From positions 62,001-126,000 of the IMG/VR virus record IMGVR_UViG_3300029286_000009: a stretch of DNA of 64,000 nucleotides, one strand, 5' to 3'. Positions 7,489-52,708 of the stretch are shown in pieces (within the stretch, counting starts at the first letter, position 1; every line of letters begins with the position of its first letter). The position numbers and the translations under genes are program-made. The notes beneath the pieces were generated by a model that made no database searches, was not told where the DNA came from, and saw nothing but the letters and a program-made list of their open reading frames with translations.

Positions 7489-7657
7489 AAGAACAATGTG
7501 GGTCAATGTGCGTTCACTTAGACATATATTTGATGAACGTCTAAAAGCAGACTGCGAAGCGGACCTGAGAAGATGTATGTGGCAAATATGGGATTTAGTG
7601 GAACCTTTAACACCTTCATTCTATTTCGATTTAAAAGAAAAGATAGATAATGTCTGA
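7457..7657 (+). pseudogene. probable C-terminal remnant of flavin-dependent thymidylate synthase ThyX
   Basis: MWVNVRSLRHIFDERL...DLRRCMWQIWDLVEPLTPSFY resembles the ThyX C-terminal pattern NxRxLxHFxxxR...EIRxxA...P. Confidence 0.45.
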
Positions 7658-8624
7658 TAAGATAAAATTCATAGATTTATTTGCGGGTGTGGGTGGATTT
7701 AGATTGGTGTTAGAACAATTTGGTTTACAATGTGTTTTCTCTTCTGAGATAGACCAGGAATGTGGTAGGATATACAATAAAAATTTTGGAGAATACCCAC
7801 ATGGAGACATTACTAAAATAAATGCTGGAGATATCCCCCAGCACGACTTTCTTTGCGGGGGATTCCCTTGTCAGCCATTCTCGATTTCTGGCAAGAAAGC
7901 AGGGTTTGAGGACACACGTGGTACCTTATTTTTCGAGATATTACGTATTGTAGATTACCATAAGCCCCAAATTCTTCTTCTAGAGAACGTTAAGAACTTT
8001 GTAAGCCATGATAGCGGAAAGACTTTTTCTGTGATCAAAGAAACACTTAGTAGTTTGGGGTATACTGTGTTTGCGTCAGTTCTAAACGCAAGTGATTATG
8101 GGGTGCCCTCTGCTCGTCAAAGGGTTTATATAGTTGCTTTTCATAATCGCCTTGATATAAATGATTTTGAATTTCCAGAAGGGAGTAAAAATAAAATTTC
8201 CTTACAAAGTTTTTTACGCGATGAAATTGATAAAAAATATGTAATTGATAGGAAGGACATTATTCTTCGTTCGTTGGAACAACCTGTAATACAAAATAAA
8301 CCTATACGTGTAGGAGAAATAAACTCGGGTAGACAAGGTGAACGCATATATAGTGCGGAATATGGTCACGCAGTTACATTTTCTGCCTCAGGCGGGGGTA
8401 TCGGTAGCACTAGTGGGCTATATTTGATAAGGGGCGGAGTGGTTAGGAAACTAGCACCTAGAGAATGCTATTCTGTAATGGGGTTTCCAGAGACTTTTGT
8501 AATATCTACAAATGAAAAACAAGCGTATAAACAGATAGGAAATAGTGTAGCATTGCCGGTAGTAAAAAGTGTTGTTAATCAGATTCTTTACACGCTAGCA
8601 AGGAGGACTTTACAGAATAAATGA
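7650..8624 (+). CDS. C5-cytosine DNA methyltransferase, M.HhaI-like (probably GCGC)
   Basis: DLFAGVGG, GFPCQPFS, ENVKN, RQRVY, QIGNSV; target-recognition region QGERIYS...TFSASGGG closely resembles M.HhaI. Confidence 0.93.
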   Translation: MSDKIKFIDLFAGVGGFRLVLEQFGLQCVFSSEIDQECGRIYNKNFGEYPHGDITKINAGDIPQHDFLCGGFPCQPFSISGKKAGFEDTRGTLFFEILRIVDYHKPQILLLENVKNFVSHDSGKTFSVIKETLSSLGYTVFASVLNASDYGVPSARQRVYIVAFHNRLDINDFEFPEGSKNKISLQSFLRDEIDKKYVIDRKDIILRSLEQPVIQNKPIRVGEINSGRQGERIYSAEYGHAVTFSASGGGIGSTSGLYLIRGGVVRKLAPRECYSVMGFPETFVISTNEKQAYKQIGNSVALPVVKSVVNQILYTLARRTLQNK

Positions 8625-12861: not shown

Positions 12862-14865
<2,004 letters not shown>

Positions 14866-25607: not shown

Positions 25608-26127
25608 GAGGTGGCGGGAGCGAGAATTGGGACATCTACGTATGGTATTAGAACGCAAGCAAGGTCGCTCTGTGTATGAGATGTCCCAGATTGCACAAGA
25701 GGAAATTAAGAGCAGGTCATTAGACTCCATTATGCATAAACTTCGCGAAATGATAACTGAAAGAGAGTTTAATGCAGATACTATAGAACTAGCCGGGGAG
25801 ATATTCCCGGCTAAATCTGTTTCTGGGTATATAGTTATTACGTTACCAGATGGAACGAAAAGACCCGCTCACCACTGGGTGTGGGAACAACATTATGGTA
25901 AAATTCAGCCAGGCTATCATCTTCATCACATTGACGGGGATACAAAAAATAACAACCTCAATAATCTTGCCATAATGTCTTCCTCCGACCACATCTTACT
26001 GCATTATAAAAAACAACCACCAGAAACTATGGCTCTATTTTATTTTTTACAAGAACATAGTTTGTGGGATGAATATCTTCAATATCGAGAGAAACTATTA
26101 GAAAATTTTGGTACAAAAAATCCTTAA
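25600..26127 (+). CDS. HNH endonuclease
   Basis: HHWVWEQHYG...HHIDGDTKNNNLNNL...H. Confidence 0.8.
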   Translation: MGKRWRERELGHLRMVLERKQGRSVYEMSQIAQEEIKSRSLDSIMHKLREMITEREFNADTIELAGEIFPAKSVSGYIVITLPDGTKRPAHHWVWEQHYGKIQPGYHLHHIDGDTKNNNLNNLAIMSSSDHILLHYKKQPPETMALFYFLQEHSLWDEYLQYREKLLENFGTKNP

Positions 26128-46973: not shown

Positions 46974-47927
46974 TCATAAAGCAAGTTTTATACGTCCGTA
47001 ATCCCCCAAGTAATCATCTTTGTCATCGTAATCAAAGTCATCTGTATAGTCAGAAGAATCATTGCTTTTTCGTCTACGGTCTAGGGGTGTTTCGTCGTGC
47101 TCATTATAGTATTGGCGTCCGATAGTGTCTTCTTCTCGTTCCCACCATGGGTCTCTATTGCTCTTGCGTATGCCACTCCACTTACCTGGAGCAGACCATG
47201 TAGCTGCCCCGCTTAAGGTGCGTGGCTCAGGAGTGTGAGTAAACTTTGTTTCAGAAAATGCATCAAAGAACGATTTCAATTTTCTGAGTTGCCCAGCTAA
47301 TTCTAGCATGGATGCACAGCACTTGTTGGTGTGCTGGAAGTGGTAGCCTATACCCATATTGAACGCGGACGTTTGCATAGGCTCCATATAACTGATATCA
47401 GAGAAGGAACCTAAGCTAAGCTTGAACTCGGCTGCTTTCAAAGCGTCTACAAAGTCAGTGTTAGTATCGTAATCATACAGAACTACATCAGAGCCTTTTC
47501 TATCAAGCCCAACTATCCAATTGTAGTCCTTGCCACAGTAGTCTACGAATTCCTCTGCAGTAGAGGAGCACCGCTCTTCATCAGTGGTAAAGAGTAAATC
47601 CATTTCTAAACCAAATTGTTTCAGAAGGTGTGTCATAGTGAATACCCCTAGGCGGTCATCAAGAGCGGGACTGAATACCATAATATCATCAGGAGTGCTG
47701 AAGGAGTCAAAGCTTGAGGACTCGGAGACCACATCCATGTGGGCCACTGCGAGTACCGTTGCACCAGAGGTCTCTCTGTAGAGAAAATGTTCACGGTTTT
47801 CGAGGTCTGGAATTACACTAAGTAAGAACCGCCTAACTTTCTTTTCTTTCATAGTGCATAGTTTACGTAGAGCGGCGATATCAACTTTCATGCTACTTTC
47901 TCTCTTTCGGCCCGACACACGGAACAA
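46974..47927 (-). CDS. M28/M42-like zinc peptidase-fold protein
   Basis: AHMD, LDDRLG, TDEE, DRKG, GYHFQH; acidic tail. Confidence 0.7.
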   Translation of the reverse strand: MFRVSGRKRESSMKVDIAALRKLCTMKEKKVRRFLLSVIPDLENREHFLYRETSGATVLAVAHMDVVSESSSFDSFSTPDDIMVFSPALDDRLGVFTMTHLLKQFGLEMDLLFTTDEERCSSTAEEFVDYCGKDYNWIVGLDRKGSDVVLYDYDTNTDFVDALKAAEFKLSLGSFSDISYMEPMQTSAFNMGIGYHFQHTNKCCASMLELAGQLRKLKSFFDAFSETKFTHTPEPRTLSGAATWSAPGKWSGIRKSNRDPWWEREEDTIGRQYYNEHDETPLDRRRKSNDSSDYTDDFDYDDKDDYLGDYGRIKLAL

Positions 47928-49216
47928 TCATCATGACCATCATTTTTGGAAACTACCCCACATTTAACGCAAATTGTGTACTCTTGATCAAGACAAACCG
48001 GGCACACGTAGTAACCTTTGCCAACTTTAGTCAAGACACCTGCGAGGCAACCTTTGCCACATGCGTCACACTGTAGAGCATGCCCCTCACAGCACTCACC
48101 ACAAAGCCATAGTTCTTCACGATCTTTGCCCATAACGGGGACTAAACGATCTACATCATCCCAGCCACTACAGAAATCGCAGTGTGTGGCGAACCCATCA
48201 AAGCAACTGTGGCACCAAACTTCGCCCTTAACAGTGTGGCAATTCTCTCTGTCAGCATAACCGGGGCATCGTTGGCATTTGGTGAATCTTTGGGTAAAGC
48301 AATCTTCGCAGAATGGGTCCTCAGATTCCTCGTGCTCATAATAGGCGTCGTTCTCCCGAATCAGCCTCCCGCATTCATAGCACGCAATCTGCCCATCTTC
48401 GCACTCTCCACATACAATTATGTCGTCGCCGTGCCATACAGCAGTATGTGGATGACTACGTCCACATTTGGTGCACGTAATGCGATACTTAAAATCTACA
48501 GCTTCGCAATCAGACACTTCCTGTGCTCCTACTATATACCCACGCCCATTGTTTATCCACAGGGCACCTTCGATGTCATCCATGTAGGACACATCAACGT
48601 TACGGTAGTATGAGCGGTTGAATATGTCAGAAAATATTCTGGCAAACGATACAATGTTCAGGTGTTCCCCCGAGCCACTGTAGACGTTGAATATAACGTG
48701 TGCTTCTTCAATAAATTTTGGATCATTGTATGGAATGCACCAAGCACGTGCCTTGGGATCATTGTTAGCTCCGTGTATTAGGAGGGCTTTGCCACCTAGT
48801 TTAGATATAATATAACGTGCCGCAGATCGGCAAGTCCAAAAACATGAGTCATGGTCACCATAGTCGCCTGGTTTCCAATCGAAATCAGATGTAACTATCA
48901 ATTGGTTATTCGAAACAGTTATACAAGATTCACGAGCAACCTTGCCTACTTTAGAAAGGAGATCGTTGGATGCTTTGTACCCATTTTTCTTTAATACTTT
49001 AGCAAATCGCTTGGGCCAGTTACCCAGCTTATTGGTCCACTCAGAGCCAATCTCGGTCATCATGCAGTATAGGACATTTCTGGTAGGAGTACATTCTTCT
49101 GACCCCCTAAGAACATCTATAATAGTTTCAATTGCACAATTGGATATTTCTTTAATTGACTTAATTGGGTATTTTCCGTCTTCAAACAAAAGTGCTCTCC
49201 TATTTTGATAGCTCAA
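47888..49216 (-). CDS. large protein with multiple C-terminal CxxC repeats
   Basis: SCFW motif; at least 10 CxxC pairs in the C-terminal half. Confidence 0.65.
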   Translation of the reverse strand: MSYQNRRALLFEDGKYPIKSIKEISNCAIETIIDVLRGSEECTPTRNVLYCMMTEIGSEWTNKLGNWPKRFAKVLKKNGYKASNDLLSKVGKVARESCITVSNNQLIVTSDFDWKPGDYGDHDSCFWTCRSAARYIISKLGGKALLIHGANNDPKARAWCIPYNDPKFIEEAHVIFNVYSGSGEHLNIVSFARIFSDIFNRSYYRNVDVSYMDDIEGALWINNGRGYIVGAQEVSDCEAVDFKYRITCTKCGRSHPHTAVWHGDDIIVCGECEDGQIACYECGRLIRENDAYYEHEESEDPFCEDCFTQRFTKCQRCPGYADRENCHTVKGEVWCHSCFDGFATHCDFCSGWDDVDRLVPVMGKDREELWLCGECCEGHALQCDACGKGCLAGVLTKVGKGYYVCPVCLDQEYTICVKCGVVSKNDGHDDCSVCRAEREKVA

Positions 49217-50567
49217 TCAAGTGTGTAATTGTACATTGTTCAAGAGAATATACAATAAACTCATCGTTTCTCAACCCAGTTTTACTGGCGTAGGCTGCAA
49301 GGCTGTCATACCCGCCGGGCGGCCCTCCCGCACAAGAGCCAGAAATTTCATAAACTTTTCCCATTGCGAATGTTATTCGTAGAAGGAACACGTTGTCAAA
49401 TTTATTCTGGCGTCCCGACCAATAGCCAGTACTATAATTGAGAGATTTTGTAGAGCTGTTAGCTCCATAAATTCCATTGCCAAACATACGCCCAGCAATC
49501 GTGTAGTTATCTCCGCTAGACAGGGGCGGGATAATAAGTCCCCCGAGAATAATTGATAGCAGGTTTCCATTTTGTGTACCATGGAATAGTTGCATTAGAT
49601 TACCGCGTTGTTTTCCTCTTGCTTCGAATCTTTCTCGTTCAGGTCCAATCTTTACTTCATAAATCGACCTCACTTTCCAGGCATCCAAATCACGATGTCT
49701 TCGTGATGTTTCGATAGCTTTTACTATTCTATTGTAAACTTTAGGGTCTTCTATAACAATTATATCCGTGTCCAGTTGGTTAAACTCTTCTGTGTCAGTG
49801 TTGTTATTAATCCCCAGCTTAGTTGCCGTGGCTAGCTGGTCTAGCAAGTCGTATTTCTCGACTAACTTGTTATCCGAGTCAATAATATCTTCGGCACGTA
49901 TCTTCCGCCCAAATTTGTGGGGGATAAGACTGAAGAACAAATTGTTAGCGATATTGACTTCATTACCACCTTTATCCAAGTTCAGTTTGATGGTGTCAAG
50001 AGCTTCTCTAGCACGCAGAATGTGCAGCTCCGTGACGGGTCCTAGGGCTGTTTCCATGCCGCTACTGGTGAAGGAAATAGCTGTGTTAGACTTAATCTTA
50101 TGTATGTTCTCTTATGCAAACTGGCGCAGCAATCGCAGAACGCGGGGGTCATATCTACTACCCACCTTTTCAATGAGGTCTCTGGGCGGGAGAACTGAGA
50201 TTTGATTTACTTTGCTTCTAATATTAAGAGAGCCAACGGTAGGACATAAGATTTCAACTATCTCGTATTTGGAAGTTCCTCCTGACTTACCACGCTGTTT
50301 CTGCCTTACAATTTCATTGTAAGTATGTCGGGCGGAGCCTTCATCGTGCCATGGTCCGCGCTCTTCGTATACGCTAGAACCTCCAATTCTACCGTAGTTA
50401 GTAAAAACACGATAGCGTTTGGTAGTTGGGTCTTCTTGTAATTCTACCATGTAAAACTTGTTAGAGTTAATATTGATATTCCCGCAAGAGAGTAAGGTAT
50501 ATTCAATTGTATTTGTGAACGGATGTGCATCCGGACCAGAAACCTTGGTTACGTTAGTGCCCAACAA
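49200..50567 (-). pseudogene. WGR plus poly(ADP-ribose) polymerase (PARP-like) gene split by one in-frame TAA at 50112-50114
   Basis: WGR-like NSNKFYMVELQ...NYGRIG; regulatory-like FSLIPH; catalytic FHGT, GRMFGNGIYGA, KSLNY, NDEFIVY (H-Y-E); ORFs 50112-50567 and 49200-50057 are in frame with an open 18-codon linker. Confidence 0.85.
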
Positions 50568-50579
50568 TTCCCTCCGCTG

Positions 50580-50930
50580 TTATTTGAGTTTCTCTTTTAT
50601 GATTTGTCCATTAGAGATGTATAGCATGTTAGCGATTCGGTGATGCTCCAGAAGCCGGATGCATTCACTACACGGACGGGAATTGAGCAAGTCGCCTGTT
50701 CGATTTATTCGAACGGAAACGATGCTAGTACCATCTTTGTCTATACCTTCGGCTAAACGGACACACATAAACTCTGCATGTTGGTAAGGATACTTGTAGA
50801 AAGGAAGAGCCTTTGGATGAGTTTTCTTTTGATTAAAGCCAACACTAATTATGTTTCTTCTCTTGTAGAGGATCGCACCATGCCGCTGTTTGTAGGTGCT
50901 ATTATACGCAACCTCTGCAGCAAGGTGCAA
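50580..50930 (-). CDS. cytidine/dCMP deaminase-fold protein
   Basis: HGA, GFN, HAE, RPCSEC. Confidence 0.8.
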   Translation of the reverse strand: MHLAAEVAYNSTYKQRHGAILYKRRNIISVGFNQKKTHPKALPFYKYPYQHAEFMCVRLAEGIDKDGTSIVSVRINRTGDLLNSRPCSECIRLLEHHRIANMLYISNGQIIKEKLK

Positions 50931-50970
50931 TGCTCTTATGTCATGTTCGGTAATACCAATAAGCTCCCTC

Positions 50971-51429
50971 CTATACCAACCCTGTTAACTCATCCAGATC
51001 CTCTCCACTAGCTCCGCAGACTGGGCATGTGCTTTGGTCGCATCTTCCTCGCACAAAAAATTCAGCGAGGCACTCCCGACATGAGCACTCCTGACGAGCT
51101 ATCTCCTCTGTTCCCTTGTTCTCTTTCATGTGTTTAAACATTTCAATCTGCTTCAGCCGTTTCTTTGCTTGTGGCTTAGTGGGATAGCACCCGAGTCGCT
51201 TACCGGATTCAGAATAGATACACCACTGGTTACCGGACTTGACAATGACTGCTTGTTCAGTCATTAGATCAAACTCAAGGATATCTGCACATTCCGGGTA
51301 TATATCTATTAGTGCGTCCCACAGGTTAGTAATTTCTGAGTACTCCTCCCGCATGTCCATCATAAATAACCTCCGATTTTTAATTCTTCTACTATCAATT
51401 TCCCTAGGTCTTTTCCACAGTAGTCGCAC
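50971..51429 (-). CDS. hypothetical phage protein with zinc ribbon
   Basis: WCIYSESGKRLGCYPTKPQAKKRLKQIEMFK; CREC..CPVC. Confidence 0.55.
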   Translation of the reverse strand: MRLLWKRPREIDSRRIKNRRLFMMDMREEYSEITNLWDALIDIYPECADILEFDLMTEQAVIVKSGNQWCIYSESGKRLGCYPTKPQAKKRLKQIEMFKHMKENKGTEEIARQECSCRECLAEFFVRGRCDQSTCPVCGASGEDLDELTGLV

Positions 51430-51634
51430 TGTTCAAACCCAGTAACAATTTCAAAGGTACCCATTCGTCGGTCCACAGAGACAGTGATTAGGTCAGATAC
51501 CTCTCCTCTGCCGCGTATATAACCCCTACCTCGGCATTGTACGCAAGAAGAGTTTTCCGACCAACCTTCTCCGGTACCATAACACTTACCACATCCCACA
51601 TAACATTCGTGTCCTACATCAACTGTAATTTTCA

Positions 51635-52708
51635 CTATTCGTCCAGATCAGCGATTTTCTTTGCCCGTGCTACAAGCACTTTGGTTGTGATGTGCAGTAG
51701 TTCCTGCTTCGAGTCTTCGTCGAGCATATCTACGTCTATAAAGGAATTGAATCGCATGGAGGCCCCTGCGGCATGATCCCCACCCCCTGCACCGCAGTCA
51801 GGGAAAAGAGCACGTGCTATTTCTGATGCCTTGCCCCCGCCGTTCTTTGTGCGTACTGAAGCCCACAGTTCTTTTCCTACGATAGCATATACAACGACTA
51901 TATGCAGGCGTTCTCGTCGCATCCATAGATCGGCGATCTGTGATATCACTCCTGCACGTTCTTCTTTCAGGAAGCCTAGATTGTATATGCCAAAGGGCTC
52001 CGAGATTATTTTGCTGCTATCAGAGATACGAAGACAGTCGTAGAAATAAGCAGGAAAGTCATAACGCATCAGCTTGTGGTACAAGTGTGGATCGTAGTGC
52101 TCTTTTAGATAGAGAAAAGCGGGAATATCTCTGGTTGCGTCCACATTATCTCTTAAGAGGTTTTCTGTGTCTGTCATAAGCCCGAGCATCAGTGCAGTTG
52201 CTACTCCTTCATCTTTTCTTGATTCAGAAGAGAAGGTGATATCAAAACTCTGTAGGTATTCTGTTATTATAGTGGAGGCAGACCCCACAGCGTGCATATC
52301 CACATTGCTACCCACCGGGCTATCTTTGTCGCAGTGGTGGTCAATTGTCCAGACATTTTCTTTGGGGGTATTCGCGGTATCACACAGTGTAAGACTGCCC
52401 GCCTTAGCATTACAATCTACAAGAACGCAAGTGGGATTACGACTATACCCTGCCCATTTGCGGGGGTCGTGTAAAGTAATATCTAGTTCACTAACCATTA
52501 ACCGATTTTGTGTTTGGTTTGGGGGCACTCCCCAAATCATTACCGGTTTGTCAAACTTGTCCCGTATCAATTTCTCTAATCCTAATGCACTCGCCATTGA
52601 ATCAGGATCTGGTGTAGGATGATCATGTAGGAGGATATCTACAGCCGCAGCACGGCATAGCATCTCTGAGAAAGCCTGCTTCTTCTCATCGTTTAATATC
52701 ATTACCAC
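51635..52708 (-). CDS. DHH/DHHA1 phosphoesterase (NrnA-like)
   Basis: HPTPDPDSMAS, LVD, IDHH, TDT, SVR, GGGDHAAG. Confidence 0.88.
   Translation of the reverse strand: MVMILNDEKKQAFSEMLCRAAAVDILLHDHPTPDPDSMASALGLEKLIRDKFDKPVMIWGVPPNQTQNRLMVSELDITLHDPRKWAGYSRNPTCVLVDCNAKAGSLTLCDTANTPKENVWTIDHHCDKDSPVGSNVDMHAVGSASTIITEYLQSFDITFSSESRKDEGVATALMLGLMTDTENLLRDNVDATRDIPAFLYLKEHYDPHLYHKLMRYDFPAYFYDCLRISDSSKIISEPFGIYNLGFLKEERAGVISQIADLWMRRERLHIVVVYAIVGKELWASVRTKNGGGKASEIARALFPDCGAGGGDHAAGASMRFNSFIDVDMLDEDSKQELLHITTKVLVARAKKIADLDE

Follow-up and report, generated by a model that had tools for sequence, protein, structure and literature searches.

One in-frame TAA interrupts a PARP gene in a freshwater jumbo phage, and we consider it likely (roughly 65%) that this stop is a recent nonsense mutation that has become fixed in the phage lineage. 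The interrupted gene would then yield a 151-aa WGR fragment, with its catalytic product abolished or strongly reduced, and would represent a young accessory pseudogene. The window, by which we mean the whole analysed stretch of 64,000 nucleotides, corresponds to bases 62001-126000 of a 259,732-bp IMG/VR virus record (G000), and its DNA comes from lake and freshwater metagenomes. An earlier description made from the letters of the window, here called the sequence-only reading, had treated the gene as phage-encoded, which its source in a virus record of this length bears out.

The PARP gene lies on the minus strand at 50567..49200, an orientation that had been absent from the sequence-only reading. 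That reading had also described two open frames separated by a single in-frame TAA, and we confirmed both the quoted junction (...LLRQFA, stop, ENIHKIKSNTAISFTSSG, METALG...) and the TAA as the sole break. ORF A and ORF B together form a single frame of 1368 nt, or 456 codons, with the following features.

50571..50575, minus strand: Shine-Dalgarno sequence GGAGG; the WGR frame starts at a TTG 3 nt further downstream.
50115..50567, minus strand: ORF A, 151 codons, then TAA (50567..50112 with the stop); aligns with the N-terminal parts of one-piece relatives.
50489..50292, minus strand: WGR domain (PF05406), ORF A residues 27-92, E 5e-11.
50388..50396, minus strand: YGR, the bacterial form of the W-G-R motif, within the WGR domain.
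50153..50115, minus strand: first conserved helix segment, YDPRVLRLLRQFA, at the end of ORF A.
50112..50114, minus strand: in-frame TAA at codon 152.
50058..50111, minus strand: 18 in-frame codons from the stop to the next ATG, with family-invariant E, N, H, T and G retained.
50055..50057, minus strand: ATG opening ORF B; an internal Met, without a Shine-Dalgarno sequence and not a conserved start.
49200..50057, minus strand: ORF B, 285 codons and a TAG stop; holds the remainder of the helical (PARP_reg) domain, then the ART catalytic domain.
49767..50087, minus strand: PARP_reg helical domain by Pfam, residues 9-115 of the post-stop protein, profile positions 22-133 of 135.
49203..49736, minus strand: ART (PARP catalytic) domain, PF00644, with the H, Y, E triad inside.
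49583..49581, minus strand: triad H, H177 of the 303-aa piece.
49469..49467, minus strand: triad Y, Y215 of the 303-aa piece.
49262..49260, minus strand: triad E, E284 of the 303-aa piece.

ORF A encodes an N-terminal tail, the WGR domain, a linker and the first conserved helix segment ahead of the helical domain. The GGAGG that precedes its start also lies 6 nt upstream of a second TTG (50564..50562).

Domain matches and predicted structure agreed on the identity of the gene. The sequence-only reading had staked its assignment on a PARP-family HMM hit, and the search returned three Pfam matches, all of which exceeded the curated cut-offs and were far from chance level: WGR (PF05406) on ORF A (E 5e-11, 43 bits against a cut-off of 22), PARP_reg (PF02877) on ORF B (E 1.6e-9), and PARP (PF00644) on ORF B (E 3.2e-19). 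Directly before the ART domain, PARP_reg reached E 4.2e-10 (40.3 bits against a cut-off of 26.8). When the 18 post-stop codons were added, the PARP_reg match began at profile position 22 instead of 34 and its score rose; since the match extends 5' of the ATG, the helical domain begins before ORF B. The FHGT, GIYGA and NDEF motifs were all found. The triad, which had been described as intact, is so, and its H, Y and E columns were invariant in 56 out of 56 aligned family members. This triad does not distinguish enzymes with a mono-ADP-ribose product from those with a poly-ADP-ribose product, as the example of PARP3 illustrates.

Compared with PDB sequences, the 303 post-stop residues matched the PARP1 catalytic fragment (E 2e-15). 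An AlphaFold model built from an alignment of 56 sequences had a pLDDT of 87 and a pTM of 0.81, and Foldseek matched it to catalytic fragments of PARP1, PARP3 and PARP4 (E ~1e-20, TM ~0.7). The model has helices in the helical domain and can be superposed on PARP1 and PARP3 fragments that comprise the helical domain plus ART. The proposed architecture of WGR, helical and ART domains therefore held up by Pfam, PDB match and Foldseek alike. Judging from these matches, the gene is by descent a PARP of the DNA-dependent clade, but a broken one: the single polypeptide expected of this clade is interrupted here by the TAA at codon 152.

All relatives found on contigs of sufficient length were single, uninterrupted proteins. 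A megablast search with 48500-51500 gave no match among cultured phages, so the locus has no close cultured relative, and a scan of IMG/VR returned distant relatives only (39% identity or less). With a word-based protein search we obtained 241 relatives at E <= 1e-10, one of which had 67% identity. All 17 homologous loci in cultured phages and IMG/VR were single frames (17/17, 393-435 aa). About 115 metagenomic relatives, among the matches listed on contigs that were long enough, were single proteins of 390-511 aa with three domains, and the few shorter relatives were all on contigs of 1.6 kb or less. Split relatives were absent from the 17 phage and IMG/VR loci and from the listed metagenomic proteins on adequate contigs.

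The nearest relative (P0002) is a 456-aa protein encoded on an 83-kb contig, with 67% identity over the post-stop part. Its contig shares the gene order of the window, which runs GP88, a DHH phosphoesterase, small ORFs, the PARP gene, a protein of ~435 aa and then a protein of ~310 aa. Opposite the TAA, P0002 has CAA, and across 58 relatives the column of the stop contained D, Q, E or N. The window gene falls into a large, mostly metagenomic subgroup of 450-480 aa proteins in which the helical domain opens with an invariant ENIH motif. By this comparison, the gene is an orthologue in a widespread phage family of one-piece WGR, helical and ART enzymes (~450-480 aa), and its ancestral state, as reconstructed from these relatives, is a single one-piece gene. 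Among the explanations that the sequence-only reading had offered for the stop, an inactivating mutation is thus favoured, given the CAA in the nearest syntenic relative.

The stop falls at a highly conserved position, and the sequence around it shows little sign of decay. It lies inside an invariant block at the start of the helical domain, Q-x-x-[D/Q/E]-E-N-I-H, where x-x denotes two hydrophobic residues. The block continues as E-N-I-H-x-I-T and is followed by invariant T, G, T and L-G-P-V-T, all of which are preserved in the window gene. The 18 gap codons themselves encode the motif ENIHxIT...T..G, whose invariant residues were found in 58 out of 58 relatives and are all retained here. In the structural model, the gap residues are predicted to form a helix (residues 2-9) and a strand (residues 13-15), the latter pairing with the strand that holds the ORF B Met.

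Compared with P0002, the gap segment contained 9 synonymous and 4 non-synonymous differences (pS 0.79, pN 0.09). Since pN is far below pS, the segment appears to have been translated for nearly all of the divergence time. Synonymous sites were saturated in the dN/dS comparison with P0002 (pS 0.79-0.87), so this comparison speaks to pN being much lower than pS and not to the recent period. We also counted deviations at the 116 columns that were at least 90% conserved, scoring the read-through sequence with X at the stop. The window gene deviated at five of these 116 columns, compared with zero to seven in intact relatives, and no decay was visible elsewhere in the gene by this count. The lack of visible decay suggests that the nonsense change is young or that the gene is still used somehow. 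An undecayed gene is also what would be expected of a functional split gene or a read-through gene, which weighs against the nonsense reading.

The stop was identical in every assembly compared. Logan contigs from three studies span the site, with zero differences over 48000-52000 at depths of 12, 21 and 4. Three contigs, of JGI 3300029286 (the source), ENA ERZ27250635 and ENA ERZ27250602 (320 kb), agreed at every base of a 4,858-bp locus, and in Logan SRR15164342 an overlapping 2,993-bp locus, which includes the stop, showed no differences. The contig sources may share runs, and we counted them as at least four separately named samples. A sequencing error, which the sequence-only reading had put forward as one explanation of the stop, is effectively excluded by this agreement. 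More generally, an artefact of assembly or sequencing would mean that the real genome has a sense codon at this position. The window is a metagenome assembly and two of the compared runs may be its own source, but the same base occurs in independently assembled contigs of three studies and in JGI, ENA (two samples) and Logan assemblies, which makes an artefact extremely improbable. As far as the assemblies show, the stop is genuine and fixed in the phage population. The comparison was of assembled contigs, which hide minority alleles, so a sense variant may co-circulate with the stop allele; this counts to some extent against the nonsense reading. The stop allele occurs in runs dated 2019 and 2021, which indicates that it is at least not strongly counter-selected, a further point against simple loss.

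We considered whether translation might pass through the stop. Among 281 long ORFs, TAA was used as the stop 133 times, TGA 83 times and TAG 65 times. No tRNA genes were found in the 259,732 bp, and other interrupted in-frame gene pairs gave no pattern suggestive of recoding; where neighbouring ORFs elsewhere share a frame, the second mostly begins within 0-6 codons, like ordinary adjacent genes. An alternative genetic code or a suppressor tRNA was rejected on these grounds.

Low-level read-through or suppression of the TAA would be a subtler possibility, in which a little full-length 455-aa enzyme is made and the stop keeps in check an activity that could deplete NAD. Such a role would fit a frame that shows full conservation of the gap codons and of the halves on either side, with one stop as its sole lesion. 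Of the three stops, UAA is the one that bacteria read through least, and here it is also the main terminator of a genome that encodes no suppressor tRNA. RNA around the stop folded no better than shuffled sequence (z = +1.5), and the stop is not conserved, as no relative carries one at this column. We regard read-through as very unlikely.

The catalytic half could be produced separately if ribosomes re-initiated at the ATG at 50057. The sequence-only reading had suggested such a switch, with a separate WGR protein and a re-initiated catalytic domain. A functional two-piece enzyme of this kind would release a free WGR protein at the TAA, and the catalytic fragment, with its truncated helical domain, would either be active without DNA sensing or reassemble with the WGR piece. 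Several observations are consistent with this: ORF B retains all three invariant H-Y-E residues and a complete ART fold, the gene has no further decay, an in-frame ATG lies 54 nt past the stop, and the allele recurs in several samples and years. Catalysis could survive the truncation, as deletion of the helical domain of PARP1 leads to constitutive activity. In addition, re-initiation of ribosomes after termination occurs in bacteria independently of Shine-Dalgarno sequences, so some ORF B product is possible, and this tempers the nonsense reading.

The details of the start site argue in the other direction. In this genome, Shine-Dalgarno sequences of at least 4 nt preceded 67% of 181 first-ATG starts compared with 15% of internal ATGs. 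There was none before ATG 50057, whereas the WGR start has GGAGG. The column of the ORF B Met was F in 30, L in 18, Y in 8 and M in 1 of 58 relatives (F, L or Y in 56 out of 58), and the intact P0002 has this Met as well. We interpret it from this distribution as an ordinary internal residue that did not evolve as a start. The 18 codons that would be skipped include invariant residues, the modelled helix and one strand of a hairpin, and no relative on an adequate contig is split. Re-initiation 54 nt past the stop without a Shine-Dalgarno sequence should be weak and would omit invariant residues. The proposed switch is therefore unsupported, and a functional two-piece enzyme seems unlikely. It is quite unlikely, too, that the stop is adaptive, giving a free WGR protein that binds DNA ends and, through Shine-Dalgarno-independent re-initiation and truncation of the autoinhibitory helical domain, an always-on catalytic fragment. 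If it were, the locus would represent a natural split and deregulated PARP used against the host.

We therefore return to a recent nonsense mutation as the preferred explanation. One nonsense substitution at codon 152 (CAA in P0002, TAA here) has cut the frame. Translation from the strong Shine-Dalgarno sequence and TTG start would end at the TAA, and the resulting 151-aa WGR fragment may remain able to bind DNA ends. Output of the helical and catalytic part would be low or nil: the next ATG lies 54 nt beyond the stop and lacks a Shine-Dalgarno sequence, and starting there would leave out invariant residues. With little or no catalytic product, the allele would be a null or strong hypomorph of a dispensable accessory gene. 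In intact family members, by analogy with PARP1-3, HaPARP and CdPARP (PMC8120803, PMC5966428), the WGR domain would sense DNA breaks, which would relieve autoinhibition by the helical domain and unblock the NAD+ site, and the H-Y-E site would then transfer ADP-ribose from NAD+ to protein or DNA targets. Any part in host takeover, DNA repair or counter-defence, as the sequence-only reading had put forward, would be speculative.

A candidate eraser of such marks is encoded elsewhere in the same genome.

G000:C1:37944-38609, plus strand, outside the window: ADP-ribosylglycohydrolase (locus L019), intact; PF03747 E 1.9e-30, 286-codon open frame.

This was the sole ADP-ribose eraser found; a search of the whole 259,732-bp genome for a macrodomain, a bacterial-type PARG and a NAPRTase found none of them. 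ADP-ribosylglycohydrolases are present in only ~5% of jumbo phages (PMC9503650). A full NAD-dependent DNA ligase, built of adenylation, OB, zinc-finger, HhH and BRCT domains and encoded at 12865-14865 (plus strand of the window), gives the same phage a second enzyme that uses NAD+.

The genes around the PARP locus are largely those of replication and nucleotide metabolism. The window encodes DNA polymerase A, NrdD, a C5 cytosine methylase, the NAD-dependent DNA ligase, ClpB-like and ClpP proteins, a radical-SAM protein, a DHH phosphoesterase and a DEAD/ResIII helicase, which places the PARP gene in that region and outside the head module. The C5 cytosine DNA methylase is at 7650-8624 (plus strand, E 1.4e-90); the difference at the stop, C in P0002 and T here, is a transition of the type made by deamination of methyl-cytosine. 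Near position 26000 of the window, gene orientation flips from plus to minus and GC skew changes sign, possibly marking a divergent or convergent module boundary or a replication landmark.

Directly upstream of the WGR frame, at 50580-50930 on the minus strand, is a 116-codon ORF with a TTG start that matched the zinc-binding region of cytidine/dCMP deaminases (E 4e-8). It was not called by the JGI and ENA gene callers, and the P0002 contig has no gene of similar size there. Downstream, a 442-aa cysteine-rich protein with many CxxC pairs (47888-49216, minus strand) shares 17 nt with the end of the PARP gene. It had no Pfam or PHROG match, and its counterpart on the P0002 contig is a conserved downstream neighbour of 435 aa. 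The DHH/DHHA1 phosphoesterase (51635-52708, minus strand, 357 aa) lies three to four genes upstream of the PARP gene both in this phage and on the P0002 contig.

A 320,389-bp ENA contig (locus L023) bears an identical PARP locus, so the true genome may exceed the 259,732-bp record, which CheckV rated as 96% complete. Outside the window, back-to-back open frames of 3199 and 2158 codons (G000:C1:2975-19048, plus strand) are parted by one TAA and an immediate start codon and would encode giant proteins. ARAGORN reported a 518-nt 'tmRNA' at G000:C1:215104-215621, also outside the window, although the genome has no tRNA genes; this is probably a false call.

One jumbo-phage lineage in nature endures although its PARP gene is severed ahead of the catalytic half, which argues that the enzyme is dispensable under at least some conditions. 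Under the nonsense reading, the locus would be a natural loss-of-function allele that can be compared with the intact, syntenic P0002. Phage PARP-like enzymes are common in sequence surveys, and the locus adds little on their role. The ENIH subgroup, with its 450-480 aa proteins, is a reasonable target for a first biochemical study of phage PARPs.

Comparison with known systems places the gene among enzymes that are already familiar. PARPs are annotated in Xanthomonas phages XacN1 and Xoo-sp13, Stenotrophomonas phages CM1 and RAS14, and Klebsiella phages 05F01, FBKp34 and KP13-16; we know of no phage PARP with an assayed function. Known phage PARPs are likewise phage-borne WGR, helical and ART proteins, with 30%-36% identity over the catalytic part. 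They differ in being single ORFs of 420-433 aa, whereas the window gene is cut by a TAA and belongs to the separate, mostly metagenomic ENIH subgroup. Reports from 2014 concerned Aeromonas phage Aeh1 and Cellulophaga phage phi4:1 (PMC4245714). PARP-type ARTs (the 'PART' family) are among the commonest viral ARTs (PMC9503650), and with this and the number of relatives found here, the description of such proteins as rare was overstated.

Among cellular enzymes, PARP1, PARP2 and PARP3 gave the best solved-structure matches, in sequence as well as in fold, and share the order of a helical domain followed by an ART domain, with WGR upstream. Compared with these, the window gene has no zinc fingers, BRCT domain or N-terminal extension, has ~23% identity and is cut at the start of the helical domain. 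HaPARP from Herpetosiphon aurantiacus and CdPARP from Clostridioides difficile CD160 are closer in design, with the minimal WGR, PARP_reg and PARP_cat domains, Y-G-R and the H-Y-E triad (PMC5966428, PMC8120803). Y-G-R is carried by most bacterial PARPs (PMC5966428). Both enzymes make poly(ADP-ribose) in vitro, in a DNA-dependent manner for HaPARP, whereas the window gene is interrupted. Both also pair with a PARG, in contrast to this phage, which has an ARH-type hydrolase only.

T4 Alt, ModA and ModB are also phage-encoded, NAD+-dependent ARTs and are used in host takeover. Unlike the window gene, they belong to the R-S-E clade instead of the H-Y-E clade, lack both WGR and helical domains and in many cases are carried in the phage head (PMC9503650), while the window gene sits among replication and nucleotide-metabolism genes. 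Against this background of known phage PARPs, what is unusual about the locus is confined to one clean stop, recurring from sample to sample, in a gene that is pristine elsewhere.
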